A stretch of DNA of 64,000 bases from Rebecca billardiae RCC1528 (taxonomy: Eukaryota > Protista > Haptophyta): NCBI GenBank assembly GCA_965240325.2, contig OZ251234.1, positions 930,001 to 994,000 on the forward strand, given 5' to 3'. Positions 943 to 54,687 of this stretch are shown piece by piece (the stretch's first letter is position 1; each line of letters begins with the position of its first letter). The notes under the pieces were generated by a model that was given only the letters and a program-made list of their open reading frames with translations, did no database searches and was not told the origin of the DNA. The position numbers were made by a program, and so were the translations under genes.

Positions 943-1162
943 TCAGCGGGACAGCTACTGGGCCTAGTGGCTATAGTAATACTATACAGTAGACTCAGTA
1001 GTGATGAGTGAATTCGACGCCCGCCCCTTCAGGGACAGCTAGGGCCTAGTGGCTATATAGTGATGCGTGAATTCGACGCGCGAGTGTAACTGTAAGGCAC
1101 TCTGGGGCCAGCACTTCAACCGACTCAGACGTCACTGAGAGCAGCCCACTCGATGCGCCTCG

Positions 1163-2605: not shown

Positions 2606-2803
2606 CGCTGCCCGCGACGATGGACTGTCTACCCACCGTTGCAAGCAAGCCGCTGCAACGTCCGAAGTCCGAACCGAGGACGATGGCACCCCCTTGATGG
2701 CGGCGCCGTGGCAAATCAAACTGCTGCTTGCTGACGAGACTGGAGACTCGGCGCGAGAAGCCATCATCGGGATGGCAGGCCGCTGCTAGCCCGCCACGAC
2801 GGC

Positions 2804-5800
2804 ATGGGCACTCCGACGGTGCGGTGCGAGTGGGCGCTGGGCGCACACGTGCCCGACCTGCAGCCTCGGACGGGCCACACCGTCGTGCGCCTCGCTGGCG
2901 GCGAGCGCGTGCTCGTGCTCGGCGGCGCGACGCGCGGGCTCTGTCCGACCGATGCGCTGATTGTCGAGCACGCGCACGGCGCGCACTGGCTGGTGCCCGC
3001 CGCAGGCCCATGCCCCGCGCGCCGGATGGCGCACACGGCCAGCCTCATCGAGCGCCGCGACGCCGTCCTCCTCTTCGGCGGCGGCAACGGCAAGCAACTG
3101 TTCGCAGACCTCTGGGCGTTGCAGCTCGCACGCTCGTCCCTCGAGCGCGGCGGGCAGGCGGTGTGGGAGCAGCTCGTCTGCGCGGGCGAGGCGCCGGCCG
3201 CGCGGATGGGGCACACCGCGTGCGTGCTCCCCGGCGAGCGCACGCTCGCCCTCTTCGGCGGCTTCGTCGAGCGCGCCGACAAGCGCGGCGGCGCGTACTC
3301 GGCGCAGCTCGTGCTTCTGCATGTCGAGACTCTCACGTGGTCGGCGCTGCGCGAGGGCGCGGTGGGCTCGGCGATGGGCGTCGGCGCGCACGCGGCCGCG
3401 CCGCTCCGCGGCCGCCTCGGCGCCGCCGCCGCGACGTGCGCCGGCCTCGGCGTCGTCTTTGGCGGCGGCTCAGGCGGGCGGGCGCTTGATGAGCTCCTAC
3501 TGATTCGGCCCATGCCGCCGCCGCCGCCGCCGCCGCCGCCGATGGTGGCAGGGGCGGAGGGCGAGGGCGGCGCGCACGGCGGGGCCGCGCCGTCGACGGC
3601 GTCCTCGCGGGGCGAGAGCGTCGTGCTCGAGCTCGCCCGCGCCTCGGGGGCCGCGCCGCGCGCGCGCATGCACGGCGCGGCCCTCGCGGTCGGCGCACAC
3701 GTGTTGCTGGTGGGCGGCGAGGACGGGCAGACGGCAGTTGGGGGCGTGGACGTGCTGTGTGTGCCCACGCTGGTGTGGAGCACGCCCGCGCACGTCGCGC
3801 TGCCGAGGCCGCCGCCCGCCGGGCTCGCGCTCGTCACGCGCTCCAAGCACGCCCTCGTCGTGCTCCGTAGCAGCGGCGGCGCTGCCGACGCGAGTGCGCT
3901 TTGGTCGGCCGCCGGCGCGGGCGGCGCGTCAGGCGCGGCGGCGGGTTCGCTCCCAGCGGAGGAGGCGGCGGTGAGTCCGGCGGTGAGTCCGGCTGCGGTG
4001 GAGGTCCTCGTGCTGGGCGGCATCGGCTCGGAGAGCGGTGGCGCGCGCGGCGCGACTGCCGCCGCGCCCGCCGCGGCCGGCGCAGTCGGCGGCGGCGAGC
4101 AGCTGCTGAGACTACGGGTGCTGCTGCTGCCGCCGCCGCCTCCGCCGCCGCCCCAGCGTCAGCCGCAGCCGCAGCCGGTGCCACCGCCGCAGCCGGCGGC
4201 AGCGGCGGCGGCGCTTCAGAGCGCGCCACCGCCGCCTCCGCCCGCGCACTCGCCGCCGCCCACGCCGGCCGCCATGCCGGACGCACCGCCGCCATCGCGC
4301 GCCGCGCCGCCACCCCCGCCACCGACTGCATCGGCCGTGCCGTCGTCCCATCTCGTCAGCTCGGATGTGCCGCCGCCGCCGCCGCCGCGCCCTCGGCCTG
4401 CGCCGCAGCACGCGTCGGCCCAGCCGCCCTCCGGCGCGCACACGGCGGGGGCGCCGTCGCCCGACTCGCCCAGCTCGCTCGCCGAGCTCGGCCCGTTGCG
4501 CACGCCCTCGCCGCCGGCCGTCGGCGGCAGGGCGAGCCGCGGCGCTGCCCGGTCACCCGGCGGCGGCTCGGGAGCTGGCGGCTCCGCCGAGCACGATGCC
4601 AGATCCGAGCGCTCTTCGGACGAGAAGATCTCGCGGTGGAGATCGATGCTGGCGGAGGCGAGGTCGGGCGTGACCTCGCCCGGGCCGTCAGAGCACGAGC
4701 GCGCAGAGCCGCGGCCTGTCGGCAGCGGTGCGTCGAGCGCGCCGCTGCCGCGGCCATCGCCACCGCCGATCGCCGCTGGCAGCCGCGCGGTGTCGGCGGA
4801 CGACGAACAGCGCGGCTCCGGCCGGCAGCGCGCGCGCTCGGTGCGGCCGGTGCGCGCGGCAGCAGGCGGCGCGGGTGGCGCGCCCGACTTGGCGGCGCAC
4901 GCGCAGTACCCGCCGATGCCGGCCGCGTGGCCGCTGCCACCGACTGCGCTCGCGTGCGCCACGGCGCCCGGCAGCCATGCTGATGCACCCGGCAGCCATG
5001 CTGATCTCAGCGCGAGAAGCGGCGCGGCGGCGGCGGCGGCGGCGGCGGCCCCGCAGCCGTACCCGCCTCCGCGCCGGCCGCCGGCGTCGGTGAGCTCGGC
5101 GGAGGAGGAGGCGGCGTCGTCGACGGGCGCGGGCTCGGCGCTCGGTGCGCCCTCTGCGTTGAGCGGCCGGTCGCCAAACCACTCCGCCCCCGCGCCCGGC
5201 GGCGCCCGCGCTCGGCTCCAGACCGAGCTCGGCGCCGCGCGCTCCGAGACCTTGGCCGCGCAGGAGGCGGCAGGGACGGCGCACGGCCGCGCGGTGCGCG
5301 CGGCGCAGGAGCTCGCCGAGACTCGCGACGCGCTCCGCCGCGTGCGGCTCGAGCTCGGCGCGGCGAGCTCCGCGCGCGCGCAGGCGGACGCGCGCGCCGC
5401 CGCCGCTGTCGCCGAGCGCGCCGCCGAGCGCGAGCGTATGCAGGCGGCGCTGGCGGAGTTGCGGGCGCAGCTGGCGGGCGCGAAGGCGTCCGCGGCGCGC
5501 GCCAAGGGGCGCGCGGCCGCGGCGGAGCGGGCGTGCGCGGAGCACGCCGCCGCGGCGGAGGCGCGCGAGGCCGAGGCGGCGGAGCTGCGCGGCCGATGCG
5601 CATCGCTTGTGCGGGTGGCCCAGCAGGTGCGTGTGTGCGCGCGCGCGCCACCCATCACACAACGCGCGCGCACACGAGTGCAGACGCGCGCGCGCGCGCC
5701 GCGCCGGCATTGGCGGCGGCGTGCGCCGCGGGCTCGCGCCGTGTGTGCGCCCTTTGCTCACGCCCCGGCCGTTCGGCACTTGCTGGCGCGCCGCGCCGAC

Positions 5801-34887: not shown

Positions 34888-37204
34888 GCGCTCGCTCTGC
34901 TGGAACAGTTTGGCGCCTCGTCCATCGCCGTGGCTTTGTCTGCACTCTCTCCACGAGCGTTCGTGCCTGCTAGCCTGCGCACCGCCTCCTGCTTTGTTGT
35001 ACTACTATACACGTCAGCGTGGCTGACATTGGCGGTCCCAGCTATCAGGACGCTGCACGAGCGTCGACCGGGGCACCCAGCACTCGGCGGCTCCGGGTTA
35101 GAATTACTCGGCCTTGGCGCTGAAGGGCAATACCGACATCTCGGGCTCTAGCGGGGGTTGCCAGCTGACCGTATCCGTGTCGACGCTCCGTTGACCACGC
35201 TACGAGTGCCTTCGCGGTCCTGCGTGCGCACGCCCGCGGCACTTGCGCACTGCAGACCGAATCCGGGACCCGACTCGGACTGAGTGACTGTGCCCGTGTG
35301 CCGCTACCGCGGGCCGGTCGGACTGTTGACTCCGATGAGTGAGACTGACTGCCCGGCGGCCCGCGGGCCGCGCCGGGGCCAGCCTCTGACGACGCCGACG
35401 GCCGGTCAGCCGCCGGCGTCGCGGGCAACGTCGCGGCGTCTCCGAGCTCGTCAGCAGGGCCAGGCGTAGTGAATCAGGCCACTCACTAAGACTCAGCAGG
35501 CGGCTGCAGGCGCCGGCCGGCTGCAAGTACAGAAGTACTGCTAAGTAGTGCAACCGGTCGCGTCGGTTTGGAAATGAGGCCGCGCGGCCCGCGGCCGCAG
35601 TGAGCGGCGTGTGTGAAGTGCAGACAGTGAGCCACACGCCGGCGGTCTCGGTCCGTCGGACGGCGGCCCGACGGCCGACCGCCGACGTCGACGACGTCGA
35701 CGGCCGGCCGGCCCGGCACGCGACGAGTGAGCCGGCCCCGGCCGCGCGGCGGCCGCCCGCGGCGCGCCGCGTGGCGGCGTGGCGGCGTGGCCGTGGGGTA
35801 GGCGGGCGGCGCAGCTCCGCGATAATACTCATCTAGTCATCATAGTAGCGTACTCTGCAATTAGCGCACGGCCTCGCAGCTCGCTCCCTGCTCAATAGTC
35901 AAGACACTCAAGTGCCGCGCGGAACCCCTTAGGCCTTACACTCCGCTCACTGTTAGTCAGTGTCACTGTGCCGGCCGCGCCGCGGCGCCCGGGCGCCGGT
36001 TGCAGCGGTTTTAACCGTAGTCATCCGGGAAATACTCAGCCGCGGCGCGGCGTCAGTATAATAAACTCGGTCTACCGCACTGTATGATTCAGTTTAATTA
36101 ACATTTTTATAAACTTTTGACATTGGCAGGTGCCGCGACCACCGCGGTGGCGCGCGCGCGTCGACGCCAGACGGTGCGTCGGGCTTCCGCTCGGCGGATC
36201 ACCGCGATGGTGAGTGATGGGCGACTACGAGGGGGGGGGGGGGCGACGGCGAGGAGCGCGGATCCTGGTGTTTGTCCCTGCTGCTCGATCTGCTGCTTCA
36301 CGCCTACAGCTTGCTGGTAACTCTGACGCCTGCGGCCCTCAGCCCGTTTCATGCCACGGCGTCGTTATTAATTAAATATATATATGTATATATGCATTCT
36401 ATGTGTCTGCTGCACTCTGAGCCTGACGCTTGCCCGTTGCATGCCACGTCGTTATATATATATATATATATATAACTATGTGCAGTGATATTTTAAAATT
36501 AAACAAATTATAACTACTTTGTCGCACCGATGACTATTACGCGCACGTGCCCGACGTTCAATAAATGACCGCGTTCCGCGGTCCTTTTCTGCATAGAATC
36601 AACGCAGTTGGGGGCCCGCGGTGGCCGTGCAATCGCGGCTCTCCGCCGTGGCAGTTCGCACGTTCACATTGTCGTCAGGAATTAGTCACTAGTCAGCAGG
36701 CGCAGGCGAGACGCGACGTGACTGTGACGCGGTTATTCGCGGGCCGGTCCGAGTATAACTCGTGACTCTCGTGAGTCGTGACTCGCAACGTGAGTCACGG
36801 ACAGAGTGTGCCATCGCAGTCCGGTCATCAGCCTGTCCCTGATCTAAATTCTAATGCGGCGGCACAGTCTCACGGGCACGCGGTCACGGTGACGGTCAGG
36901 GAGCCTGGTTTAATGGCGGAATGTTATTATAATAATAATTATATATATATATATATATTATGTGGCAATCAAATGCGGCCAGCCGGCCCGCGCCGGCGGC
37001 GGCACGCGGGGTTAGGCCGCGGTGGCCGTCGGTGGCACTGTAACTCAGCAGTCTGGACTCGGTCGCGGCGAGTCGGGGCGGTCCAGTAGGCGCGCCGGCA
37101 CACGGCGGACAGTCGGACACGGCTGGACTTGGAGAGTGCGGTACTTACGTTTCGAAACGCGCCCGGTGCACCACGGCGTCGCCCACTCGATGGATCCTCA
37201 CGGT

Positions 37205-39224
37205 TCACGACATGATGACGCTCTTGGCCCTCTGGATCTTCCCGCGCCTGCCTTTGAGGCGCGGTGATGCGCTGAGCATTCCCTTGCCGCCGAACAGGCG
37301 CGACTGGAGCAGCTTCCCAGAGTCACGTCGGCCGCCGAGCTGGGGGGCGCCCGGATCTGGCGCGCCCTCGAGCGTGTCAAGCTCTGCGTCCACCGCACGT
37401 CCCTTTGCCTGGGTGAGCGCGAGGAGGTGATTCTTCGCGAGCGTCTCGGACTCCAGCTGCGCCTGGCACGCACCCATCATGCTCTTGAAGTAGTCGGACT
37501 GCGGGAAGTCGGCATCATCGAAGCCAAACGGGTTGGAGAGAATGGCTGCCGCAGCATGAGACGGAGAGGGCGCATCGCGTGTGGTCAGACGCAACCGCAC
37601 CACCAGCGGCGCGTGCGCGCGCGCGCGCGCGCCTCGACGTCCCAGCCCGCGCCGTACGCGCTCGGCCACCCAGCCCATGCGCACTGGCGCACTCTGCGCG
37701 CGCGCTCGCGCGCACTGTGCAGATCCAGGCAGGCTTGGTAGAAGACGCTCCAGAGGAGCACTTGGAGGATGACAATGCCATACACAACCCACTCGCCTTG
37801 CTCATGAGCGGCAGCAAGATCAGCAGCAGACTCCATCGTGGCCGTGGCCATGGTGAACTTGACGATGAGAGTGAGAAGTGCCACGTAAGGCAGTGGCAAT
37901 TGCACACCCACATACCTGGCGCCGTGCAGGGGCACAGACAGAGCCGCAGGTGAGCAGCCCGTGATCAGGCGCACGGATGGTGGCGGTCGAGACAGCATGC
38001 ATGAGCAGATTGCGCACACGACTGCTGTTGCACAGCACACGTCGCGGGAGCAACAGCACCAGCATGCCTGCACGTGCCCTTGGTTGCACGGCACGGCTCG
38101 GCTCGGCTGGCTAGTCCGCGGGAGCCCACGCCCGATGGCGCGACTGGGCGCACCCGCCTGGCAGGGACGTCGCTGCAGGGTCGCAGCGACGCAGGCGCGC
38201 ACATGTGCGAGTCTCCAACCATACCCCGCAGCTTGAAGATCTGCTCGAGCAGCAGCTTGCGCTCGTAGTGCTTGCCTCCCCAGCGGCCGCCAGCCATCTC
38301 TGCCGCCGAGTGGAAATGATAGAGGAGCCATCCCGCCACCGATTGCGCCTTGCGCGGCAGCGACTCGAGGATGGTGCGCTCTGCAGGCATCAGCAGCCCG
38401 GCGTCTTCCATCTGGGAGAGATCATTTTCACCGCGCGCCTCGGAGAAGGTGAGCATGAAGATGAGCAGGAGGTAGCGCAGCACGCTGCGTGGAATGGGCG
38501 CCGCATCATGGGGACAGAGTGCGCGTCAGGCAGGTCACGCGCGGCACGAGACGGCACGTGGGCGGGGTGACGCGCCGCTGGACGACACCATGGCGCGACG
38601 GTTCACAGACAGACTGGCGTGACCCGGGGCACACGGCATGCAGTGCATACGGTACCGTCTGCGCATGGCGCGCGCATGGGCATCAGTGCCAGCGAAGACG
38701 TGGCCCGCCATCGTGGAGATGTTACACACGTTGCCAAAGAGCGTCCCTACCACCTGCAGCCGCAGCGTGCTCCAGCGCGAGAGCACGAGGCTCACGAACA
38801 GGCCGAGGAAGAAGGCAGAGAGCCGATGGAGGTCGCCGACGAGCTCGGCAAGCTTCTCCTTGACGTCAAGCATATTCTCGAGCTCCACGGGGGAGTAGTG
38901 CACGATGAAGCCGAGCATGACGGCGATTCCCACCAGCACGAACGCCTGTACCCACAGGAACGGATTCTCCAACAAGGTGCCGCGCAGGATCACCGCAAAG
39001 CCAAGCTTGTGCACGCGGCCAATATCGTAGCGGCTCACATGCCCAGATGCCGAGAAGCGCACGAGCGCCTGCTCCTCGCCCCCGCACACGCCTCGAGTGT
39101 CGTCGTAGCAGGTGCGGCTGCTTCGCCCCAGCTTGTGCTCGGGCGAAGCAGGTGGCTTGCCTTGCGCGGACGAAGGAGCTCCGGGTGCTTCATTGCCCGG
39201 GGGTGGGCCAGTGCCTCCAGACAT
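37205..39224 (-). CDS. Bestrophin-family protein, 4 exons (copy 1)
   Basis: F.LGLFVSLVLSRW, LRY, GLL..AE..L, QLPLPYV, LSNPFGFDDADFP spread over four ORF segments. Exon borders approximate. Confidence 0.85.
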
Positions 39225-39699
39225 TCTGGGACCCTCCACACCGCGACGGCCGCGGACACCGCCTACTTCACGGCAGAATTGCAAAGGTGGTCGCGCGATT
39301 GTTGGGGGCGCCACCCGGGTGGCGGCGGCGGCGAGGGGCCAGGCCGATGAGTATTATTATAATAATAGAAAGGCCTCCGGAACATTCCTGTGATCCTTCG
39401 GACCATAAGATATTCTTGTCGTCAACTTCCCCGCGCTGTGGTTGGTGCAAACTCCTTGATGACTTTACCTGCAATCAAGAGCGGTAAAAATCGTGGGGTC
39501 GTTTAAGTGGCCTGCGTCCAATCAAACCACCGAACGGGCTCGCCGTAACTATGAACCTGCGCGGTATGCCGGCGGGGCAGTTGCCGCGTCGCGGGTGATT
39601 GGAGACGAGCTGTAATGACGCGATATGAAGTGAAGAACTGCATGAACGACTACGAAAATACGAACTGCCATATGACTAATAATGGCGGGCCGTACCGGC

Positions 39700-40038
39700 C
39701 ACAGTGCCTCCCACATGCTCCTCCATGCTGCCATCGAGTGGGCGCCGTACTTGGCGGGCTGCCACGTTCGCCTTTTCACGGACAGCAAGGTGGCCCTCGG
39801 GTGGCTGCGCCGGTGGCGTGTGCCGGGCTCGGCGCTGCTCAATGGCCTCCTGCAGCGCCTCTCGCTGCTGGTGGCGGAGCACGCGATCACGCTCTGGTGC
39901 TGCCATCTACCCGGTGCTCGCAACCGCCTCGCCGACGCCCTCAGCCGGCGCCGGGAGACGTCGGCTGACATGTGGCTCGAGCTCTGCTCGCTCGCGGCCG
40001 AGCCCCGGTTGGCGGGCGAAGCGGCGCTGGCCCTTTGA
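39700..40038 (+). pseudogene. C-terminal RNase H fragment of a YR retrotransposon
   Basis: W...L.G..V..FTDS.VA, HLPG.RN.LADALSR. No upstream RT and no downstream MT domain. Confidence 0.85.
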
Positions 40039-40098
40039 CGCCGGGCGTTCTCGCCGCTCGGCGCGCAGGCTCGCCCCCGGCCATCTCCCCCTTCTTCG

Positions 40099-40470
40099 TT
40101 CAGCGATCCGCGCATCGCTTTCCTGCAATCTCATCTTCCATCAGCGATATGCACATCGCTTGCTTGCAATCTCATCTTTCAGCGATATGCACATCGCTTG
40201 CTTGCAATCTCATCTTTCAGCGATATGCACATCGCTTGCTTGCAATCTCATCTTTCAGCGATATGCACATCGCTTGCTTGCAATCTCATCTTTCAGCGAT
40301 ATGCACATCGCTTTCCTTGCAGTCTCACCTTTCAGCGATGTGCACATCGCTTGCTTGCAGTCTCATCTTCGGTCTGCAATGTGCACATCGCTTGCTTGCC
40401 ATCCCTTATTCTCTCAGCGGTCGATATGCACATCGCGTGCTGTCGCTTCTTGCGATCTCGTCGCTCAGCG
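40099..40470 (+). repeat. 38-bp tandem array with internal hairpin, about 9 units
   Basis: TCAGCGATATGCACATCGCTTGCTTGCAATCTCATCTT is perfect at 40141, 40179, 40217 and 40255, and degenerate at both edges. Confidence 0.95.
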
Positions 40471-40705
40471 GCAGGCGTCTTTCGTCGCTGCCTTCACCAC
40501 GGCAGACCGGGCAGACCTTGCCCCGGCGCCCGTTCCTATCAAAGACCCTGCCAGCGGGCGGGCCTCCGCCCTGCGCTCTCCGCCGGGTGCGATCCGGTCG
40601 GTTTCAGCGTGGGCTTCGGGCGGCCGCTACCCTCCAAGCGCCACTCTGCGCCAGGCGGCCGAGGCCCTTCATGCTGGGCAAACAAGCCGGGAATACCCTG
40701 CGGTG

Positions 40706-41662
40706 ATGGACAACCCCATCGTGGCCGCAGCCGCGGGGTGTGTGGCGCTCGCGGCGGCGGCGGTGGGCTCGGGCCCGAACGCGGCGGGGGTCCGAGCGTA
40801 CGTCGCCTTCTTTCACTCGGGTGGCGTGGCGCCAGTGTGGCCCCCGTCGGCCCTGGCCCTGCGGCTGTTTGCGGCGCACTTGGGGCTGCAGGGGAAAGCT
40901 CCCACGACCATCTCGCAATACGTGTCGGCGGTGCAGGTGGCGGCTCAGGTCCTGGGTGTGCAGGAGGGGCCCATCAGGGACCTCGGACGTCAGCACATCG
41001 TCGCCGCTTTTCGGCGGCTCCCCTCCCGCCAGCCTGCCCCGGCCCCGGCGCTTTCGCTGGATTCGGTCCGCGCGATCGGCGCACGCGTGCGCGATGGTGA
41101 CGCTGCTTTCTGGGCCATGACACTGCTTGTGCAGCTTTTTACGATGTGTCGGGCCGAGTGCGTGGCCGGAGTCGCACGGTACGGGTCCTCCAAGTTCATC
41201 CGGCTCAGGGACCTCGCACCCACCGCCCTCGGCTTCCTGGTGACCCTTTGCAGCGAGAAACACCACGCGGGCCGCTTGGCGGTTGAGCTCCTGCCCCGCC
41301 TACCGGCGGGTGCGCCGCTGTGCCCAGTGGCGGCATTGGGCAGGTACCTCCTTCGCCGCCCCCTGGAGTCCTCGGCCGACGACCCCCTGTTCGTGCTCCC
41401 TTCGGGGGCACCGGTCCCCTACTCGGCTTATTTGGCTTGGCTTCGCAGGGTGGGCGCAGAAGTTGGGCTGCGGCCCGCTGACGTGTCTACCAACTCGGTG
41501 CGCCGGTGCGCCGCTGCCGTGGCTGACCACCTCGGCTTCACGGGGCAGGAACGCGCGCTGGCCGGTCGCTGGAACGCCGCCCCTGCGACGTATTTCCCCC
41601 GCGCGGCGGAGCGCCGGGAGCTGCGCCTTCGGCTGGCTGCCGCCTTTGCGGATCCTGGCTGA
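40706..41662 (+). CDS. Tyrosine recombinase (Ngaro-like)
   Basis: F.AHL...K..TTI..YVSAV; R (MCRAE); K (SEKH); LCPV.AL..YL; PLF; NSVRR in place of HxxR; GRW; Y. Confidence 0.88.
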   Translation: MDNPIVAAAAGCVALAAAAVGSGPNAAGVRAYVAFFHSGGVAPVWPPSALALRLFAAHLGLQGKAPTTISQYVSAVQVAAQVLGVQEGPIRDLGRQHIVAAFRRLPSRQPAPAPALSLDSVRAIGARVRDGDAAFWAMTLLVQLFTMCRAECVAGVARYGSSKFIRLRDLAPTALGFLVTLCSEKHHAGRLAVELLPRLPAGAPLCPVAALGRYLLRRPLESSADDPLFVLPSGAPVPYSAYLAWLRRVGAEVGLRPADVSTNSVRRCAAAVADHLGFTGQERALAGRWNAAPATYFPRAAERRELRLRLAAAFADPG

Positions 41663-42084
41663 CTGACGCCGACCGCCTGTGGCACCGCTGGCACTCGACT
41701 CTCGCGTCTCTTCCCACCCTTCCCCTCTGCGGCGGCGGCCCGGACGGCCTCGAGCCACCGGCCCCCGGGCCACCGGGCCTCCACCTCTCCGAGGTGTGGC
41801 ACCCTTCTACGCGACGGTGGCCGGGAGCCGCCGCCCCTCAGCCAGTCCCCTTGCTGATCAACTGCGACCCTCGTTAGATAGCGCGGGTTGCGGGCAGAGT
41901 CGGGGCGACTGGCAAAGAGGGGGGTCGGCAGGCCCATCGCTACCTTAGCCGCGTAGCCGGAGCGTCGCGCGGAAGGAGGAATAGCAGTCGGGCGCTCCGC
42001 CGCTACTGTCACCCGGCCGCCGCCCCCGCGGCTGCCGCCGGACCGCGGGCCGAGTCCGCCGCGAGGCGGGCCTGGTCCCAGTTA

Positions 42085-43056
42085 TTGTTCTATAACCGTT
42101 CGGTTATAGGGGTATAACTGGGCCAGCCCGCCGCCATGATCGGCTGCTCCTCAATGCTGCTAACCGCTGCTGACCTGCTAGGGCGGCTGACCGGACCGTG
42201 CCTGGGCGGGCAGCAAGCTCCGGGCGTCGGGTGCGCGCCCAGCGAAGCGGTATGATTCCTGGGCGGGCTATATACGGGCAGCCGGTCCCGCCTGTACCGA
42301 ACCGGTAGATTCTACCTCTGAGCGCCGCCGATGCGGGCCGCGGCAGGCCTGCTCTTCGGCAGCCGAGGCAGGGCGGGGCCTGGGCTGATAGCCCCAGCTG
42401 TTCAGCAGCACTTCTGTCCACCGACCGTACCCCGCTCGGTGGCGACTCCTCTGCTAAGGGCGGGCGCAACCCTCGTCGGCTGCGAGCGGGCCGTCGGCTT
42501 ATTCCTCCTCGGGTGCTGGCGGTGGCGTCGCTACTGATTTCGCACCCTGCCCTCCCACCCGGCTCGACTGTGGTGGGCATGGCTTGTTCCGGTTGTGGCG
42601 AAATCAGTAGCGACGCCACCGCCCGCACCCGAGGAGGAATAAGCCGACGGCCCGCTCGCAGCCGACGAGGGTTGCGCCCGCCCTTAGCAGAGGAGTCGCC
42701 ACCGAGCGGGGTACGGTCGGTGGACCGAAGTGCTGCTGAACAGCTGGGGCTATCAGCCCAGGCCCCGCCCTGCCTCGGCTGCCGAAGAGCAGGCCTGCCG
42801 CGGCCCGCATCGGCGGCGCTCAGAGGTAGAATCTACCGGTTCGGTACAGGCGGGACCGGCTGCCCGTATATAGCCCGCCCAGGAATCATACCGCTTCGCT
42901 GGGCGCGCACCCGACGCCCGGAGCTTGCTGCCCGCCCAGGCACGGTCCGGTCAGCCGCCCTAGCAGGTCAGCAGCGGTTAGCAGCATTGAGGAGCAGCCG
43001 ATCATGGCGGCGGGCTGGCCCAGTTATACCCCTATAACCGAACGGTTATAGAACAA
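42085..43056. mobile_element. 972-bp near-perfect palindromic element
   Basis: ~460-bp arms with 1-2 mismatches around a 54-bp spacer (42544-42597). TTA on both sides. Confidence 0.85.
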
Positions 43057-43111
43057 TTATTATAATAATAGAACACGGCCCGCCATTGGTGTAAACTGCA
43101 TACGGTTGGAG

Positions 43112-44222
43112 CAAGGGAGGTCCGGGCCGGTCGGGAGCTCCCAGCGAGCGGCCAGCGCGACGTCACTGCAAAGTTTTCCCTGAGCGCCGGGCGGCGGCAG
43201 CGGCGAGGGCGAGTACTCCGCTGGCGGGGCGCGCACGGGGCACAGCGCTGCGGGCGCGGATGTGCCCGCAGAGCCGGCGCGCGCGGACGGACTGTTGCGG
43301 GAGAGCACTCGGCGCCCTCCTGCGCCGCGCGTCTTGCGCCACGCCTCTTTCGCCTCGGCTCAGGGCAGCGCGCACATGCGCGCCGCGTCAAGGCCAGCCT
43401 TGCCTGCGCCGCAGCCGACCGCGCGCGCGCCGTGCGCGGCGTGGTCGGGAAGGAACGGGCGCTGCCGCGGGGCGAGGTGGCGACACCATGCGCGCACGCC
43501 ATGCCGCCCCGTGATGCCGCGAAAGGGCACGGCAATAGATCTGCACAGCTGTTGACGAGTGCTGATCACTTGTCGTGCCAAGCCACGGACCTGAGCTCGA
43601 AGAAGATGATGAAAGAGCATCAGCGCGAGGAAAGCGTCGCATCCAGCACCTCTACTTGACCATACGGTGATGAATATCCATGTAAGAGTAGCCCGCGCGC
43701 CCGTCTGGCACTGTTCTGCGTCTCAATGATCGTCCTGACAAGGGTCACGACCGCGAGGCCGTGCACACCATTTGTGACAAGTCAAAGAGGCATGCAAACG
43801 GACCGACGACACGCTCGTCAAGGCGTGGCGGGGCGGCATGGCGTGCGCGCATGGTGTCGCCACCTCGCCCCGCGGCAGCGCCCGTTCCTTCCCGACCACG
43901 CCGCGCACGGCGCGCGCGCGGTCGGCTGCGGCGCAGGCAAGGCTGGCCTGGCCTTGACGCGGCGCGCATGTGCGCGCTGCCCTGAGCCGAGGCGAAAGAG
44001 GCGTGGCGCAAGACGCGCGGCGCAGGAGGGCGCCGAGTGCTCTCCCGCAGCAGCCCGTCCGCGCGCGCCGGCTCTGCGGGCACATCCGCGCCCGCAGCGC
44101 TGTCGCGCCCCGCCAGCGGAGTACTCGCCCTCGCCGCTGCCGCCGCCCGGCGCTCAGGGAAAACTTTGCAGTATGATGTCGCGCTGGCCGCTCGCTGGGA
44201 GCTCCCGGCCCGACCTCCCTTG
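43112..44222. mobile_element. Foldback element of the CAAGGG family, 1111 bp
   Basis: CAAGGGAGG...CCTCCCTTG ends. Diverged homologue of the 23173 element, in opposite orientation. No TSD seen. Confidence 0.85.
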
Positions 44223-44252
44223 GCCACCCGATTCCAATCGCTACTACCAGTA

Positions 44253-44840
44253 CAGTTTACTATGTTTTAACGTGCACACTTGGTTAAGGCGTGATTGACG
44301 CCATCCAATGACACTGCACAAAGACACCGCCACAAAACAGACCGGCGCAGGCAGGTGAGGGGCGCGTTGCCGCACCTCATCGAGGTGGCCATTGCAGCAA
44401 GCGGCCGCCCCGCGCCCGGAGGCACGCGCTCGGGAGCGCGCTCTGACACCACACGGGGAGGGTGCTGCACCTGGATGTTGTATCCCAGCCACCTCGAGAG
44501 TGCAGCCGCGCCAAACACCTGCCTGCGCTGTGAGCGACGCCTAACGTCGACTGATCGAGCCCCAGCCGAAGGGAAGAACTGGAAGATGAAGGGTGGGCAG
44601 GTCCACATGCCCGGCGTAAACTGCGCGCTGCTCGCCTGCGGAGGCAAGCAGCGCACCCCCGCCGCCTTCGCAGCAGCGGGGGCGGGGGAAAGCGGCCCCT
44701 CTCGGCTGCCGCCAGCCCCTGTCTGCCCACCTACCCCGGTTGTGGCACAGAGCCTTCGCCTGCCCCGAACACAAACACCTTGTGAACAGGGTCAGGCGCG
44801 GCCCCACGCCCCATCGAGACGAGTGGGCCCGCGAAGAGCG
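44253..44840 (+). mobile_element. Tc1/mariner-like element left end (duplicated at 49550-50137)
   Basis: Begins TA|CAGTTTACTA. Homologous relics at 12.3 kb and 21.6 kb. Confidence 0.6.
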
Positions 44841-44901
44841 CGTTTACTAAGAATAAGAGACGCACACAGCTCAGGCAGGCGAGATCTCAGTTTATTAATA
44901 A

Positions 44902-45760
44902 TCTACTACGCGACCCGGAGATCTCTCGTCCGCATGATTTAATTAATTAAATCAGTGTCGACAGTGATCGCCTGATCGGCGGCAACGCAGGCCGCATTGA
45001 GTTTAAAAATCCATTCTGATTTGTGGCGCACGGCCCCCGGCCCGAAAGCGGGCGAAAGGTCTGAGCGTGAGCGAAAGCCGGGGGGGGGGGGCGGCGCACG
45101 TGCTCTGCAAAATCAAAAAAGAGGATGCGCGCAGGATTTGGGGGATTTTTGTAGGTGGATTTAGGTGTGAAACCGCAGCATGGAGACCCCATATCGCTGG
45201 CTGACATGATTGCGTTTGTACTGCCCCTTAATCTTTGGATAGTAAGTAATAGAAGAAATCGGATGGAATCAAATAGGACGAAGTCATCTCTGATACCTTT
45301 CTGATAGTCAAGATTCGTGTGTTGAACTGACCATAAAAAGGTGAGATATCGAACTAATTCTCTGGATAGCTGTACACTCCTCAGATTCATCAAAGCGTGA
45401 CGCGATATGGTATTGCGCGGGTAGCTTGAATCGACGTTCCCGCGCGCCCTGGTATCATACGGTTATCAAGCTACTCTTGCTGATATACTTTTGTTCATAC
45501 ATCTACTGTAATACGACTTCAATGCGGGTGGCAATCCATTCTTGTGATTGCAAGAATGGATTGCCACCCGCATTGACGGGCCTGAAAATCTCGTCATGAG
45601 CATAAGAATTTCTACCGCTTCACGCACGACCCTTGATTCTCTCCCATTTAATACCGGCGCGTCCGGGAGAGCTTGACGAATATGAACGATAAAATTGAGC
45701 GGACAAATATTCATAATATCTCCCTTCATGATTAATACTATACCATGGTACGTGGCCTAG
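44902..45760 (+). mobile_element. Putative non-autonomous Helitron, internally deleted copy
   Basis: A|TCTACTAC start, CTAG|T end, low GC. Subterminal hairpin is weak. Confidence 0.4.
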
Positions 45761-46208
45761 TTGCGGCTCGTGACTCTCGTGAGTCGTGACTCGCAACGTG
45801 AGTCACGGACAGAGTGTGCCATCGCAGTCCGGTCATCAGCCTGTCCCTGATCTAAATTCTAATGCGGCGGCACAGTCTCACGGGCACGCGGTCACGGTGA
45901 CGGTCAGGGAGCCTGGTTTAATGGCGGAATGTTATTATAATAATAATTATATATATATATATTATGTGGCAATCAAATGCGGCCAGCCGGCCCGCGCCGG
46001 CGGCGGCACGCGGGGTTAGGCCGCGGTGGCCGTCGGTGGCACTGTAACTCAGCAGTCTGGACTCGGTCGCGGCGAGTCGGGGCGGTCCAGTAGGCGCGCC
46101 GGCACACGGCGGACAGTCGGACACGGCTGGACTTGGAGAGTGCGGTACTTACGTTTCGAAACGCGCCCGGTGCACCACGGCGTCGCCCACTCGATGGATC
46201 CTCACGGT

Positions 46209-48228
46209 TCACGACATGATGACGCTCTTGGCCCTCTGGATCTTCCCGCGCCTGCCTTTGAGGCGCGGTGATGCGCTGAGCATTCCCTTGCCGCCGAACA
46301 GGCGCGACTGGAGCAGCTTCCCAGAGTCACGTCGGCCGCCGAGCTGGGGGGCGCCCGGATCTGGCGCGCCCTCGAGCGTGTCAAGCTCTGCGTCCACCGC
46401 ACGTCCCTTTGCCTGGGTGAGCGCGAGGAGGTGATTCTTCGCGAGCGTCTCGGACTCCAGCTGCGCCTGGCACGCACCCATCATGCTCTTGAAGTAGTCG
46501 GACTGCGGGAAGTCGGCATCATCGAAGCCAAACGGGTTGGAGAGAATGGCTGCCGCAGCATGAGACGGAGAGGGCGCATCGCGTGTGGTCAGACGCAACC
46601 GCACCACCAGCGGCGCGTGCGCGCGCGCGCGCGCGCCTCGACGTCCCAGCCCGCGCCGTACGCGCTCGGCCACCCAGCCCATGCGCACTGGCGCACTCTG
46701 CGCGCGCGCTCGCGCGCACTGTGCAGATCCAGGCAGGCTTGGTAGAAGACGCTCCAGAGGAGCACTTGGAGGATGACAATGCCATACACAACCCACTCGC
46801 CTTGCTCATGAGCGGCAGCAAGATCAGCAGCAGACTCCATCGTGGCCGTGGCCATGGTGAACTTGACGATGAGAGTGAGAAGTGCCACGTAAGGCAGTGG
46901 CAATTGCACACCCACATACCTGGCGCCGTGCAGGGGCACAGACAGAGCCGCAGGTGAGCAGCCCGTGATCAGGCGCACGGATGGTGGCGGTCGAGACAGC
47001 ATGCATGAGCAGATTGCGCACACGACTGCTGTTGCACAGCACACGTCGCGGGAGCAACAGCACCAGCATGCCTGCACGTGCCCTTGGTTGCACGGCACGG
47101 CTCGGCTCGGCTGGCTAGTCCGCGGGAGCCCACGCCCGATGGCGCGACTGGGCGCACCCGCCTGGCAGGGACGTCGCGGCAGGGTCGCAGCGACGCAGGC
47201 GCGCACATGTGCGAGTCTCCAACCATACCCCGCAGCTTGAAGATCTGCTCGAGCAGCAGCTTGCGCTCGTAGTGCTTGCCTCCCCAGCGGCCGCCAGCCA
47301 TCTCTGCCGCCGAGTGGAAATGATAGAGGAGCCATCCCGCCACCGATTGCGCCTTGCGCGGCAGCGACTCGAGGATGGTGCGCTCTGCAGGCATCAGCAG
47401 CCCGGCGTCTTCCATCTGGGAGAGATCATTTTCACCGCGCGCCTCGGAGAAGGTGAGCATGAAGATGAGCAGGAGGTAGCGCAGCACGCTGCGTGGAATG
47501 GGCGCCGCATCATGGGGACAGAGTGCGCGTCAGGCAGGTCACGCGCGGCACGAGACGGCACGTGGGCGGGGTGACGCGCCGCTGGACGACACCATGGCGC
47601 GACGGTTCACAGACAGACTGGCGTGACCCGGAGCACACGGCATGCAGTGCATACGGTACCGTCTGCGCATGGCGCGCGCATGGGCATCAGTGCCAGCGAA
47701 GACGTGGCCCGCCATCGTGGAGATGTTACACACGTTGCCAAAGAGCGTCCCTACCACCTGCAGCCGCAGCGTGCTCCAGCGCGAGAGCACGAGGCTCACG
47801 AACAGGCCGAGGAAGAAGGCAGAGAGCCGATGGAGGTCGCCGACGAGCTCGGCAAGCTTCTCCTTGACGTCAAGCATATTCTCGAGCTCCACGGGGGAGT
47901 AGTGCACGATGAAGCCGAGCATGACGGCGATTCCCACCAGCACGAACGCCTGTACCCACAGGAACGGATTCTCCAACAAGGTGCCGCGCAGGATCACCGC
48001 AAAGCCAAGCTTGTGCACGCGGCCAATATCGTAGCGGCTCACATGCCCAGATGCCGAGAAGCGCACGAGCGCCTGCTCCTCGCCCCCGCACACGCCTCGA
48101 GTGTCGTCGTAGCAGGTGCGGCTGCTTCGCCCCAGCTTGTGCTCGGGCGAAGCAGGTGGCTTGCCTTGCGCGGACGAAGGAGCTCCGGGTGCTTCATTGC
48201 CCGGGGGTGGGCCAGTGCCTCCAGACAT
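46209..48228 (-). CDS. Bestrophin-family protein, 4 exons (copy 2)
   Basis: Same protein as 37205-39224. The differences I noticed are intronic. Confidence 0.85.
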
Positions 48229-48412
48229 TCTGGGACCCTCCACACCGCGACGGCCGCGGACACCGCCTACTTCACGGCAGAATTGCAAAGGTGGTCGCGC
48301 GATTGTTGGGGGCGCCACCCGGGTGGCGGCGGCGGCGAGGGGCCAGGCCGATGAGTATTATTATAATAATAGAACACGGCCCGCCATTGGTGTAAACTGC
48401 ATACGGTTGGAG

Positions 48413-49519
48413 CAAGGGAGGTCCGGGCCGGGAGCTCCCAGCGAGCGGCCAGCGCGACGTCACTGCAAAGTTTTCCCTGAGCGCCGGGCGGCGGCAGCGG
48501 CGAGGGCGAGTACTCCGCTGGCGGGGCGCGCACGGGGCACAGCGCTGCGGGCGCGGATGTGCCCGCAGAGCCGGCGCGCGCGGACGGACTGTTGCGGGAG
48601 AGCACTCGGCGCCCTCCTGCGCCGCGCGTCTTGCGCCACGCCTCTTTCGCCTCGGCTCAGGGCAGCGCGCACATGCGCGCCGCGTCAAGGCCAGCCTTGC
48701 CTGCGCCGCAGCCGACCGCGCGCGCGCCGTGCGCGGCGTGGTCGGGAAGGAACGTGCGCTGCCGCGGGGCGAGGTGGCGACACCATGCGCGCACGCCATG
48801 CCGCCCCGTGATGCCGCGAAAGGGCACGGCAATAGATCTGCACAGCTGTTGACGAGTGCTGATCACTTGTCGTGCCAAGCCACGGACCTGAGCTCGAAGA
48901 AGATGATGAAAGAGCATCAGCGCGAGGAAAGCGTCGCATCCAGCACCTCTACTTGACCATACGGTGATGAATATCCATGTAAGAGTAGCCCGCGCGCCCG
49001 TCTGGCACTGTTCTGCGTCTCAATGATCGTCCTGACAAGGGTCACGACCGCGAGGCCGTGCACACCATTTGTGACAAGTCAAAGAGGCATGCAAACGGAC
49101 CGACGACACGCTCGTCAAGGCGTGGCGGGGCGGCATGGCGTGCGCGCATGGTGTCGCCACCTCGCCCCGCGGCAGCGCCCGTTCCTTCCCGACCACGCCG
49201 CGCACGGCGCGCGCGCGGTCGGCTGCGGCGCAGGCAAGGCTGGCCTGGCCTTGACGCGGCGCGCATGTGCGCGCTGCCCTGAGCCGAGGCGAAAGAGGCG
49301 TGGCGCAAGACGCGCGGCGCAGGAGGGCGCCGAGTGCTCTCCCGCAACAGCCCGTCCGCGCGCGCCGGCTCTGCGGGCACATCCGCGCCCGCAGCGCTGT
49401 CGCGCCCCGCCAGCGGAGTACTCGCCCTCGCCGCTGCCGCCGCCCGGCGCTCAGGGAAAACTTTGCAGTATGATGTCGCGCTGGCCGCTCGCTGGGAGCT
49501 CCCGGCCCGACCTCCCTTG
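48413..49519. mobile_element. Foldback element of the CAAGGG family, 1107 bp (duplicate of 43112-44222)
   Basis: Near-identical to 43112-44222. Confidence 0.85.
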
Positions 49520-50198
49520 GCCACCCGATTCCAATCGCTACTACCAGTACAGTTTACTATGTTTTAACGTGCACACTTGGTTAAGGCGTGATTGACGCCA
49601 TCCAATGACACTGCACAAAGACACCGCCACAAAACAGACCGGCGCAGGCAGGTGAGGGGCGCGTTGCCGCACCTCATCGAGGTGGCCATTGCAGCAAGCG
49701 GCCGCCCCGCGCTCGGAGGCACGCGCTCGGGAGCGCGCTCTGACACCACACGGGGAGGGTGCTGCACCTGGATGTTGTATCCCAGCCACCTCGAGAGTGC
49801 AGCCGCGCCAAACACCTGCCTGCGCTGTGAGCGACGCCTAACGTCGACTGATCGAGCCCCAGCCGAAGGGAAGAACTGGAAGATGAAGGGTGGGCAGGTC
49901 CACATGCCCGGCGTAAACTGCGCGCTGCTCGCCTGCGGAGGCAAGCAGCGCACCCCCGCCGCCTTCGCAGCAGCGGGGGCGGGGGAAAGCGGCCCCTCTC
50001 GGCTGCCGCCAGCCCCTGTCTGCCCACCTACCCCGGTTGTGGCACAGAGCCTTCGCCTGCCCCGAACACAAACACCTTGTGAACAGGGTCAGGCGCGGCC
50101 CCACGCCCCATCGAGACGAGTGGGCCCGCGAAGAGCGCGTTTACTAAGAATAAGAGACGCACACAGCTCAGGCAGGCGAGATCTCAGTTTATTAATAA

Positions 50199-53009
50199 TC
50201 TACTACGCGACCCGGAGATCTCTCGTCCGCATGATTTAATTAATTAAATCAGTGTCGACAGTGATCGCCTGATCGGCGGCAACGCAGGCCGCATTGAGTT
50301 TAAAAATCCATTCTGATTTGTGGCGCACGGCCCCCGGCCCGAAAGCGGGCGAAAGGTCTGAGCGTGAGCGAAAGCCGGGGGGGGGGGGCGGCGCACGTGC
50401 TCTGCAAAATCAAAAAAGAGGATGCGCGCAGGATTTGGGGGATTTTTGTAGGTGGATTTAGGTGTGAAACCGCAGCATGGAGACCCCATATCGCTGGCTG
50501 ACATGATTGCGTTTGTACTGCCCCTTAATCTTTGGATAGTAAGTAATAGAAGAAATCGGATGGAATCAAATAGGACGAAGTCATCTCTGATACCTTTCTG
50601 ATAGTCAAGATTCGTGTGTTGAACTGACCATAAAAAGGTGAGATATCGAACTAATTCTCTGGATAGCTGTACACTCCTCAGATTCATCAAAGCGTGACGC
50701 GATATGGTATTGCGCGGGTAGCTTGAATCGACGTTCCCGCGCGCCCTGGTATTAGCCTGGTCCAAACGCACTGGAGCACTTTCGGGGATTTTATCGCCAA
50801 ATGAATGCGGGCCCCTAGGCGCGCGCTCACACCCGGAAACAGCGTAGCAAATGGGCCCAGCCCGGGCGGAGCAAAAGTTTCGGCCTAAAAATCGCATCCG
50901 CGGCCCGTCGTGAGCGTGCGCGCGCGCGCCGCGGACAACTACGGACACATAGAGAATCGTCAGTCTGAATGTGGGTAAGTACTTAGCCGAAATGAGCCCA
51001 AACGCACGAACTTACTTATTGGCGTACGTCGAGGCGAACATGAACCTTGGTACAGGCCATTAGGATGGGCTCTGGTCTGTGCGCAAGTGGCCGTACTCAA
51101 CTACTGCAAGATTGACTATATTACCCATTTGTACCCGCATAATATGGGAAATTTACCCGCATAAATATGCGTTCTGCGTCTGTGTAATTAAATGCCAGTA
51201 TGTCGTTACATATTCGCCATAGGTGGGTAGCTGTCCCAGGCTGCACGATTAGTGCGGCGCTCGGGGTGCAGTGGTCGGACGAGGCTCCGCCTGGCCTTCC
51301 GCGCACTCCTGCAGACAAGAAGAGGGCCGGACTCCCACCCGGCCAGGCGTGCGACAGTCGGTCAGGTGCTGGACCTGGTCTGGAGACCATCTCCTGCGTG
51401 GCGACTGGCCGATGTGCGGCACAACGCGCGCCGCCGTGAGCCACACGGCAGGTTCGCAACGGATCCGGATCGCGTGTCCATGGCGGCGTGCATCGAGTCA
51501 TTCAAGCTGTCAAGTCGCGTGCCACGCCCGCCCTTTCACTTGGGGCATCCGTACTGCCTACAACGACGACATGTGCGTCCTTAGACGAGGCATAATCGCG
51601 GTTCTAGCTGCTCGTCCAAGGGTCAGATCGCACGTCCTTGCTCGCCCGACAGCCTCAACGGCGGACTGATGTGATCCGCGGGTGACGATGCGACCGCTTC
51701 GAGTGCGCCTACGGCCACCACCGGGGTGGGGATCGTTCATGGGCACCCTCCGCGTGCCATGACATGCTCTGGCCGTGCGTGGTGACTTGACCCACCGCAC
51801 GTAAACGGGGAAGACACCCGAGCACGTGCTTCCGAGCCACCCGAATGGCACAATGTGCCACCCATGGACACCAAACACGTGCCAAAGCGCGAGCCTTGCG
51901 TGCTGGAGTAGCCGCACGACACCAAGGAAGACGTACGAGCGCTCTCAACCATCTTCAAGCGACGACTCCGTCGACTCTGCCTCGCAGACCGCGGTACGAT
52001 CCTCGACCTTGTGCTCGCAGCAAAGGCCACGACGGTAAAGCAGCACCCAGGGGATGGGAGTCAGCCGGCAGCCACTACAATGTAACTGTACATACCCAGC
52101 CCCGCAAGGCGAGCCGTCCTGATCGCCCCCAGCCCGTCATACAGCTCCACGAGAAGCACAAATCGACTGCCGCCGCCTTGGGCGACCCATGCGCAAACGT
52201 GACGGGACTGGCCGGATGAAGCGTTGGCGATGCGCAGCGCGCCCAACGCTGGTGGTGGCATCGAGTACATGCTAGGGGTAGGCGGTGCCCCATGCGAGCC
52301 GTCGCGTGCCGCGCATATTCCCGGAGGTGCCCCTTCTCGAAGGCGCAGCGCAACCCAGCAGCTGAGCGTTCGACGCGCGCCGTCGGGCGAGAAGTCGACC
52401 TGGCGACGGACCGCGGGCGGCGGAAGCAACGCAGACATGTCGCTTAAGGTGTGCACGCACACCGCCGGGGCACCCGAACGATGTGTCCAGCACTACACCT
52501 GACATGAGGCGGCGCAGTCGTCCAGTCGAGGCTCTCGAGCCCCTTCCGACCTCGTCGCGGCGAGCCGTCGGACGGCCGGTGGCGATTTTTGACGAGCGCG
52601 ACGAGCTGAGAGCGACGAGAAAAATCGGGAGAAATGAGGCGCCCAAAATCCGAAAAAGGCTTTTTCAGTGGCGAAAATCGGGATGGACCAGGCTACTGGT
52701 ATCATACGGTTATCAAGCTACTCTTGCTGATATACTTTTGTTCATACATCTACTGTAATACGACTTCAATGCGGGTGGCAATCCATTCTTGTGATTGCAA
52801 GAATGGATTGCCACCCGCATTGACGGGCCTGAAAATCTCGTCATGAGCATATAAGAATTTCTACCGCTTCACGCACGACCCTTGATTCTCTCCCATTTAA
52901 TACCGGCGCGTCCGGGAGAGCTTGACGAATATGAACGATAAAATTGAGCGGACAAATATTCATAATATCTCCCTTCATGATTAATACTATACCATGGTAC
53001 GTGGCCTAG
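50199..53009 (+). mobile_element. Putative non-autonomous Helitron, longer copy (2.8 kb)
   Basis: A|TC...CTAG|T ends, no TSD, no recognisable Rep/helicase ORF. Confidence 0.4.
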
Positions 53010-54687
53010 TTGCGGCTCGCGCATTTAGACGGGCGGGCAGCAGGCTCCGAACGAGGCGCAGAAAGCCGCCACTGCCCATGTAGGCCGCCGCCGCACGATC
53101 GTTCAATCCGACAGACTCAGCGCAGGTGCGCGCGGCTGCGGTGGGTCCCAACGGCCGTCGGCATCGCATTCGTGCCTCTTTCCCCCCTCGCGCCCCGCCC
53201 CGGTGCGGGTGCCGGACCCGCGTCCACGCGCGTCGGCGCGCCCGTCGCGCAGTTTAATTGTGCATCAAGCTCTTGGCGGCTGCTGCTGCAACTACGAGTC
53301 GCTCGCAGACGGCAGAGGTGACGCTGCTGGCGGCCAGAGGGCGATATACGATGCCGTGTCTTTGACTGGGCTGTGCCGACCCATTACGGCCACGCGCGCG
53401 GTGCGCGGCGTGTGAGCTAGTCTTGCTTGCGCCAGACGTAACTGCGACAGCCCTCTGCAGTCTGCATCGCCTTGCGAGGGCAGGGCGGGCGAAGATGTGG
53501 TGCAGGCTCGAGGCACACTCGCCCCGTGCCGTGTGTGACGTCCGTGGCTGCTGCATCGTCTGGGAGCGGCGAGCGCACGATCAGCTTGCAGCTGCCGGCA
53601 CTCGCGGGCGACGGCACTGTCTCGTGGTCAAACACAGCGCTCGGCGTGAGTGAGCAGCCCGCGGGAGCGGTGGCAGTGACCGAGCTGCGCCGCACCACCG
53701 GCCGCACGCGCGTGCGCCAGTTGGGTGGCGTCGTGGCCTCGCCTTTCAGCCGTTTCATCCGCCGCGCAGGCCGATTTTACGCTGTCAGCACCCATTTGTC
53801 GACGCGCTACGCGTCAGACGGCTGACGACTGCCGGGTGATCCGCCAGTGTCGGGCCGACGGGTGGTCCGCGGGAGCGCGCGCTTCGCCGTGGTGGCCTGG
53901 TATGGCCCCGGCGGCGGCTGGGCTGGCCAGGGGAGCGTAGACTGTACCAGGGCAGTGCCGCTAGGCGCATGCCAGCGCCGCCGCCGCTTTTCTGGCGCCT
54001 GATATTTTGCTCATAGTTGGCGATTGCCCGCGGGCCTGCTCCCGGCTGCGCGGTCGCCGGCCCGCGGTGTGATTCCAGTGAGCCCGGGCCCGCGTTTACT
54101 GTAACTAATCTGCGTATAACCCGACTGCTCAGCCGCATCACCCAGCGCAGCTTCGCCCGCGACGACGGCTTCGCCTGGCTACCAGCCTACCACTGCTCAT
54201 CAGCCGCGTGCCCGGCTTCGGCTCGGCGGGCGTCCGGTTCGGCCGAGCACGGCTGCAGCGCAGCACGCGAGACCTCGGCTGGAGCGGCCGGCTGTGACGC
54301 GGATGGCGGAGGTGGGCTTTGGGCTCGGGCTGCCCATGAGCCACCACGGGCTGTACCGTCTGCGCAGATCGCGCTTGCGGCCCGGCCGCAGCCCTCCTCG
54401 GAGCGGCGCGCCCGTCAGAGCTGAGACTGATCACGGGCAGGCGCACGAGCGACACTGCCGTGCGGCTGTGTCGAGCCGCCGCGTGTGCTCGCAGGCGCGG
54501 CGCTCGCATGGGCTCAACGCGGGCGCAGCGGGTGCGCGCAGCTGGCGCACGCAGCCACGCGCGGAACTCAGCTAGGGCCGTGCGCCCTCAATAACTTTGA
54601 CGCGTTGTTTACTACCCGAAGATCGGCGTAGCCGATCATAAATAATGATTAATGGGCGCATCCCCTGGCCCGAGTGAGTTACGACTA

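Follow-up and report, generated by a model that had tools for sequence, protein, structure and literature searches.

A probable one-off patch of Ngaro-like retrotransposon DNA in a recent tandem duplication of Rebecca billardiae

A stretch of 64,000 nucleotides from the haptophyte Rebecca billardiae RCC1528 (contig OZ251234.1, positions 930,001 to 994,000; hereafter, the window) contains an insert of 3,685 bp (window positions 39371-43055) in which an open reading frame (ORF) for a tyrosine recombinase (YR) is followed by a large palindrome, and which is bordered on either side by the same short sequence. The question raised by this locus is whether the insert is a mobile element in its own right or DNA that reached its place by some other route. 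The initial annotation, made from the letters of the window, had left the choice between a YR-only mobile unit, cargo moved by another mechanism, and loss of the insert from a second, empty copy of the locus. We have analysed the insert in the context of the 72-Mb assembly of this one genome, on which all results below are based. Its anatomy, its junctions, its genome-wide uniqueness and the normal copies of its source family, which carry a reverse transcriptase (RT) and have no target duplications, are observed, and this evidence favours the second option: the insert is probably a one-off, non-canonical patch insertion and not a transposable unit.

The insert resides in one of two tandem copies of the surrounding DNA. 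Alignment of the flanks shows that an 18-mer, ATTATTATAATAATAGAA, borders the insert on each side in tandem copy 1 (36759-45766), as a left target copy (39353-39370) and a right target copy (43056-43073), while tandem copy 2 (45767-53019) has a single 18-mer between the same flanks, an empty, intact site (48357-48374). The exact count of the 18-mer in the window is three, at 39353, 43056 and 48357, with an expectation of zero, and by genome-wide search the target site is single in the 72-Mb genome. The three exact 18-mers and their flanks bear out the 18-bp target duplication and the empty site that had been read from the window. The left target copy overlaps a perfect 16-bp palindrome, TATTATTA|TAATAATA (39352-39367), about the centre of which the duplicated stretch extends asymmetrically from -7 to +11. 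The length of the duplicated target is given here as 16-18 bp: the first two nucleotides of the right 18-mer (AT) can equally be assigned to the end of the insert.

The two tandem copies are 99.77% identical over 36759-39370 versus 45767-48374 and 99.71% over 43056-45455 versus 48357-50752; over about 5 kb, they are separated by five substitutions (~5/5,012; about 0.1%) and by two gaps of 4 nt. They derive from a recent tandem duplication of an original unit of ~5.3 kb, with a 4-nt microhomology, CTCG, at the duplication junction. The insert had been called polymorphic; this holds for filled versus empty paralogous tandem copies, which are what was compared, and not as a statement about alleles. 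Copy 2 harbours an insertion absent from copy 1, a terminal inverted repeat (TIR) element of 1,943 bp (50753-52695) that has the ends TAGCCTGGTCCA...TGGACCAGGCTA and whose 7-bp target, CTGGTAT, is duplicated. With one private insertion in each of them, the tandem copies appear to be diverging by private insertions, which fits an insert acquired after the duplication; private insertions after the duplication are plausible for either tandem copy.

In the genome-wide search for recurrent boundaries that the initial annotation had proposed, the full 3,685 bp was matched by the window alone; other loci match from position 343 of the insert (39713) onwards or in the terminal repeats only, and no second locus in the 72-Mb assembly shares the boundaries of the insert. 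It consists of four pieces, joined via microhomologies of 2-5 nt (CATG, GCGA, AT). Leftmost is an orphan filler of 95 bp (39371-39465) with no further match in the 72-Mb assembly. It is followed by a piece of 252 bp (39466-39717, forward strand) that is 99% identical to a locus on C10 (G000:C10:1129645-1129896, minus strand there). The C10 donor stretch is otherwise single-copy and intact, and the copy in the window differs from it by one substitution in ~250 plus an indel at the joint. The C10 piece meets the third piece, derived from a retroelement, at a common CATG, so that the left 347 bp of the insert (the orphan and the C10 copy) are foreign to the retroelement. The fourth piece is a complete terminal repeat unit of the same element, in inverted orientation. 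At neither end of the insert is there a poly(A), A-rich, microsatellite or LINE-derived tail (LINE: long interspersed nuclear element).

The boundaries of the third and fourth pieces acquire their meaning from the normal copies of the source family. BLAST against fourteen fetched loci and inspection of their ends gave the layout A1-ORF1-RT/RH-array-YR-B1-A2-C-B2, where RH is RNase H, and BLAST of eight copies showed the split direct repeats A1...B1-A2-B2, the internal ones lying 3' of the YR, with an extra spacer C. A1 measures 463 bp, B1 275 bp and C 57 nt; ORF1 (601 aa, gag-like) begins 2 nt past A1. Normal elements have the ends TTATTGTTC...CCCAGTTAT or TTATTGTTCTATAACC...CCCAGTTAT, and within them B1 passes into A2 at CCCAGTTATTGTTC, from which it follows that a TTAT core is common to both ends. 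The RT (L031:4365-6695) matches RVT_1 at 5.6e-8, above the curated cut-off, with a YIDD motif in the translation; the RT/RH ORF has the D/E/D/...ADALSR motifs of RNase H, with a weak RT_RNaseH score (0.023). The distance from the end of RNase H to the start of the YR is 668 bp, mostly occupied by an array of 38-bp repeats. Inspection of the flanks of normal copies revealed no flanking target duplication.

Absence of a methyltransferase domain separates Ngaro from PAT and DIRS1 elements. In the source family, Pfam gave RVT_1 alone, in a search with no dedicated DIRS methyltransferase profile. By its predicted structure, the family is Ngaro-like, following a definition that includes split direct repeats of the form A1...B1-A2-B2 whose internal members come after the YR (PMC4157794). 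It shares with Ngaro-like elements the gag-like ORF1, the RT/RNase H and a Cre-like YR, and differs from them in the 38-bp array between RNase H and YR, in an Asn in the place of the catalytic His and, together with its sister family, in a spacer C of 57-64 nt between A2 and B2.

Against this layout, the retroelement piece of the insert (39713-42601) corresponds to the 3' 2.9 kb of an element, from within RNase H through C, and stops exactly where B2 normally starts. It opens with an RNase H stub (39713-40038, forward strand), the C-terminal end of the RT/RH ORF of full-length copies, which marks a 5' truncation: no gag-like ORF1 and no RT remain, and RNase H has lost its N-terminal part, including the first two catalytic acidic residues. 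The 38-bp array follows (40099-40403, forward strand; 7.8 copies), each unit of which contains the quasi-palindrome AGCGATATGCACATCGCT. All copies of the source family carry this array internally, with differing numbers of units, and its predicted RNA fold is much better than those of shuffled sequences (z = -6.4). The YR ORF (40706-41662, forward strand; 318 aa, Cre-like) is open and is the only intact ORF within the insert. The RNase H stub, the hairpin array and the open YR ORF, all named in the initial annotation, are confirmed. Downstream of the YR lie repeat B1 (41811-42085, forward strand), terminating in ...CCCAGTTAT, repeat A2 (42082-42544, forward strand), with the B|A crossover core TTAT at 42082-42085, and the 57-nt spacer C (42545-42601, forward strand), which follows A2 in normal copies also. 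In the place of B2 stands a complete A unit in inverted orientation (42598-43057, reverse strand), ending at the canonical element terminus ...GAACAAT. Compared with a complete Ngaro-like element, the insert lacks A1, ORF1, RT and B2, has an inverted A for B2, and carries foreign DNA on its left.

A2 and the inverted A are the arms of the palindrome (42084-42543 and 42598-43057), and C provides its loop, the 54-nt spacer at 42544-42597. The giant palindrome had been recognised correctly, albeit as an imperfect one: by direct comparison, the 460-bp arms are identical at 458 of 460 positions, with mismatches at 42415 and 42517, a first computed value of "100%" being due to rounding. The arms have in common one variant that is private among copies and three more whose sole other occurrence is in L036, the C16 copy; two additional private G-to-T changes are present in arm 1. 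An assembly foldback artefact is an unlikely origin of the palindrome: the arms differ at two sites, stop at unit boundaries and have distinct, unique flanks.

Three internal breakpoints (A start, A end and C/B2) fall no more than 4 nt from element boundaries. Arm 2 spans A to within 1-2 nt at either end. The right joint of the insert (...GAACAAT|TATTAT...; on the other strand, ...ataAT|TGTTC) is within the range of the left ends of normal copies, and the inverted A overlaps the right 18-mer by 2 nt (AT). At the other end of the inverted A, GCGA constitutes the last four bases of C as well as the start of B, and it is complementary to the TCGC at the end of A2 (42540-42543). The junction between C and inverted A has no second occurrence in the genome. 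By a rough estimate, each of these boundary coincidences has a chance of ~1% for a random break, which suggests donors with physical ends or nicks at these points. Since the pieces end exactly at unit boundaries, we infer extrachromosomal replication intermediates, rather than chromosomal copies, as the donors. The duplication, the single element terminus, the filler and the microhomology joints, set against normal copies, in which both termini are always present and the target is not duplicated, argue that the insert did not arrive by the normal recombinase route, and that it has moved no more than once.

How could such an insert have formed? We infer a break, the nature of the donors and the participation of a copying enzyme, which may be the RT of the element or a host polymerase. 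A staggered break in or beside the AT-rich 16-bp palindrome (39352-39367) would have been filled by the 95-bp orphan, the 252-bp C10 copy, the 3' 2.9 kb of a Ngaro-like element and an inverted complete A. The pieces would have been joined by end joining or by template-switch synthesis at the microhomologies of 2-5 nt (CATG, GCGA, AT), and fill-in of the stagger would have produced the 16-18-bp duplication. The retroelement donors may have been a linear cDNA ending at C plus an A-length, strong-stop-like DNA; alternatively, the inverted A could stem from a 3'-end snap-back, whereby the end of C would fold onto the end of A2 (GCGA on TCGC), with run-off at the recombinase cleavage site or at a nick at TTAT.

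Capture of cDNA at chromosome breaks has reportedly been seen in work on Ty1 in yeast. RNA- or cDNA-templated patches at breaks have been reviewed (PMC5110952); the templated insertions of class 2, typically without target duplication, resemble the insert in being one-off occurrences of retroelement DNA together with unlinked fragments, with an intact donor locus and microhomology joints. In yeast, foldback synthesis starts from an inverted microhomology of 10 nt, leaving a loop of 41 nt, and the product is then end-joined via 0-5 nt of homology (PMC11724301). The insert has a short inverted microhomology as well, of 4 nt with a 54-nt loop; its tract is ~460 nt long as compared to mostly <14 and up to ~150 nt in yeast, and the recombinase crossover is where it ends. 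A similar system that can be grouped with these foldback insertions is the self-priming of retroviral strong-stop DNA. Extrachromosomal cDNA of DIRS-1 is mostly linear; the primer of its RT is not known and a 3' hairpin has been proposed (PMC7192593). A further-reaching interpretation of the insert is that it is a fossil of the replication intermediates of a YR retrotransposon, the breakpoints marking real cDNA ends (those of a cDNA with its start at the C end, and those of a strong-stop or snap-back DNA as long as A); we regard this as a tentative idea, with a smallish chance of being right. In the sister family at C1 (see below), the 3' end of C shows no conserved pairing with the A end, and the folds of the A end plus C are no better than those of shuffled sequences (z of -1.06 and -0.70), so that a conserved self-priming hairpin is unsupported.

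Several observations weigh against a patched break. The insert has a duplication of 16-18 bp, typically missing from human class 2 patches (PMC5110952), and a 460-bp inverted repeat unit also sets it apart from them. A snap-back that took place after the tandem duplication should yield identical arms; these differ at 2 of 460 positions, versus ~5 in 5,012 for the tandem copies (Poisson estimate, P about 0.08), a weak excess that may reflect error-prone copying or two A templates. The C10 donor is located within ~250 bp of a copy of a foldback family, another member of which is found 38 bp away from the site of insertion; this proximity may be coincidence, or it could indicate a homology-guided, DNA-templated route. 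Lastly, the break and the donors are deduced from assembly sequence, in which the 95-bp orphan matches no other place.

Members of this foldback family, ~1.1 kb in length and with ~300 candidate copies genome-wide, occur in the window at 43112-44222 and 48413-49519, and in L043 at about 2465-3576. The member near the C10 donor of the 252-bp filler is ~170-245 bp away from it. Homology-guided copying of C10 via the foldback family was considered but fits poorly: it should have brought along ~170-245 bp of C10 sequence that the insert lacks. A symmetric cruciform, or a recombinase cut, as the maker of the duplication was rejected on account of the asymmetry of the duplicated stretch (-7 to +11).

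Other routes to such an insert must be weighed against a patched break. A LINE enzyme acting in trans could have nicked the AT-rich site and carried out target-primed reverse transcription with end-to-end template jumping, on A-length minus DNA, followed by the RNA of the element beginning at its 3' end, a transcript of C10 and finally a fourth template. A duplication of 16-18 bp at an AT-rich target is in keeping with an insertion of LINE type, and 5' truncation, an inverted segment and a chimeric 5' part are features of class 1 events (PMC5110952); moreover, the C10 and retroelement pieces share one orientation with respect to a possible ATG with which the C10 piece ends. As a LINE (class 1) retrocopy, the insert would thus be ordinary in its duplication, but it has no poly(A), microsatellite or LINE 3' tail, its ends being single-copy DNA or an A repeat, and the first template would have to be antisense A DNA, an unnatural substrate for a LINE; we consider this route unlikely. 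DNA-templated replicative repair, by microhomology-mediated break-induced replication or fork switching, would have a broken or stalled 3' end copy an unidentified locus, C10, a chromosomal retroelement and its own nascent strand, before returning 18 bp upstream. This would account for several donors, microhomologies of 2-5 nt, an inverted segment and a duplication at the return point, and it gains from the fact that the C10 donor adjoins a member of the foldback family that flanks the insertion site too. With chromosomal templates, however, three breakpoints on unit boundaries amount to a triple coincidence, and no chromosomal copy in the assembly has both the YR and the A variants of the window, which leaves replicative repair with a slight probability.

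The recombinase itself may be given a part in the event, either in one half of it or in the whole. In a half-canonical reaction, the YR would have joined the start of A to the AT palindrome as a pseudo-site, the other end having failed or having been scrambled by inversion, deletion and filler. The joint on the right, being within the natural variation of the left ends of the family, is what such a reaction would leave, and the TTAT core, set in a quasi-palindrome of GTTAT/ATAAC motifs, finds a counterpart in a target that is a TTAT/ATAA-rich perfect palindrome. To this extent, the proposal of the initial annotation that the AT-rich quasi-palindrome may serve as a recombinase site has some merit. 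Conservative recombination yields no 16-18-bp duplication, though, and normal copies have none; the insert lacks a B2 end, the duplication is asymmetric about the palindrome centre and several extra breakpoints are required, so that we hold the half-canonical event to be very unlikely. An autonomous YR-only unit recombining at an AT-rich site would be comparable to a Crypton, since a Cre-like YR is the sole intact ORF of the insert; the ORF is open and the sister family has an element at C1 with split repeats in which the YR is the only ORF. Unlike a Crypton, the insert is unrepeated and without matched ends, its left end is single-copy filler within 347 bp unrelated to the element, its boundaries are unique, and its YR belongs to an RT-bearing family, 98% identical to the YR of RT-bearing elements. 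A YR-only mobile unit is not supported by these results, which come close to refuting it, and we deem it extremely improbable. Finally, the empty site could have arisen in copy 2 by deletion between two 18-mers, in which case the insert would predate the tandem duplication. The arms (2/460) and the C10 piece show slightly greater divergence than the tandem copies (about 0.1%), which agrees with an older insert, but the deletion adds one rare event and does not explain how the 18-bp duplication arose; the extra divergence could equally have come from error-prone synthesis, from two A templates or from gene conversion between the tandem copies.

If the insert is a patched break, its importance as a mobile element is minor, as it is a dead, one-off chimera from an ordinary Ngaro-like family. 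It would provide, in a GC-rich alga, a clean natural example of how DNA from a retroelement and from another chromosome can fill a break, with the empty site kept 9 kb away. If the joints are real molecular ends, they make testable predictions for priming and strand transfer in YR retrotransposons, and, should the insert truly be a fossil of replication intermediates, it would give a first sequence-level clue to the sites of priming and strand transfer, a question that is open for the DIRS order (PMC7192593).

The source family itself has a varied set of copies. Two older copies (C5 and C20b) have only A-int-B, where int is the internal region, and two loci (C12 and C32) are solo A-C-B; these forms read as the expected leftovers of direct-repeat recombination. 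Four young copies, L031 (C20:384200-394199), L033 (C17), L034 (C3) and L035 (C16), share an identical deletion of 851 bp (window 40849-41699) by which most of the YR is lost, and a fifth, L036, has a different YR deletion. The spread of these YR-less copies implies that the recombinase of the family works in trans. An open YR frame is kept only in the window, C5 and C20b, the frame at C37 being shifted; the window YR is 98% identical to the YR of the RT-bearing copies at C5 and C20. The B|A crossover (42077-42122) is a quasi-palindrome of 46 bp, with 22-nt arms that are 82% complementary and four motifs of the GTTAT/ATAAC type, plausibly a lox-like binding site of the recombinase.

Sister families were examined in loci of 3.9 kb. 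One of them, with a YR 47% identical to that of the insert, is represented by a 2.6-kb element (L053, reverse strand, 658-3230; about G000:C1:41563-44135). This apparently single-copy element at C1 has the layout A1-393 bp-YR-B1-A2-C(64 nt)-B2; its split repeats are proper, a TTAT core is present and RT is absent, and by these features it reads as a YR-only derivative. Its spacer C of 64 nt has a similar, pyrimidine-rich start (the 5' half is conserved); as the sister family retains C, the spacer appears to be a regular part of the terminus in this clade. C matches the start of the internal region at 25 of 57 positions, a score that ~2% of shuffles equal, which is only suggestive of C being a diverged copy of that start.

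The identity of the recombinase was settled by profile search and not by single-sequence searches. Queried singly, the YR gave blank or sub-threshold results in Pfam, in PDB by phmmer and in a word-index protein search. Paralogues at 47% and 26% identity within the genome allowed an alignment in which R...K...(H/N)xxR...GRW...Y is visible, and a profile search of 1.8 billion representatives yielded 6,896 relatives, several with PF00589 or a SAM-like N-terminal domain above cut-off. In an alignment of 40 sequences, R149, K185, R266, W289 and Y296 are invariant and position 263 is H nearly throughout; in the source family and in the 47% sister family, residue 263 is Asn (TNSVRR). The 40-sequence profile matches Cre recombinase over the full length at 4e-23. 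An AlphaFold model from an 8-sequence alignment was too poor to be used (pLDDT 51.7). A third YR family in this genome, 26% identical, has open frames of 364 aa and at least six near-identical copies (L059-L064), among them G000:C19:150517-151347 and others on C25, C23 and C1:1703868. The cluster of the closest relative of the YR includes an MMETSP transcript.

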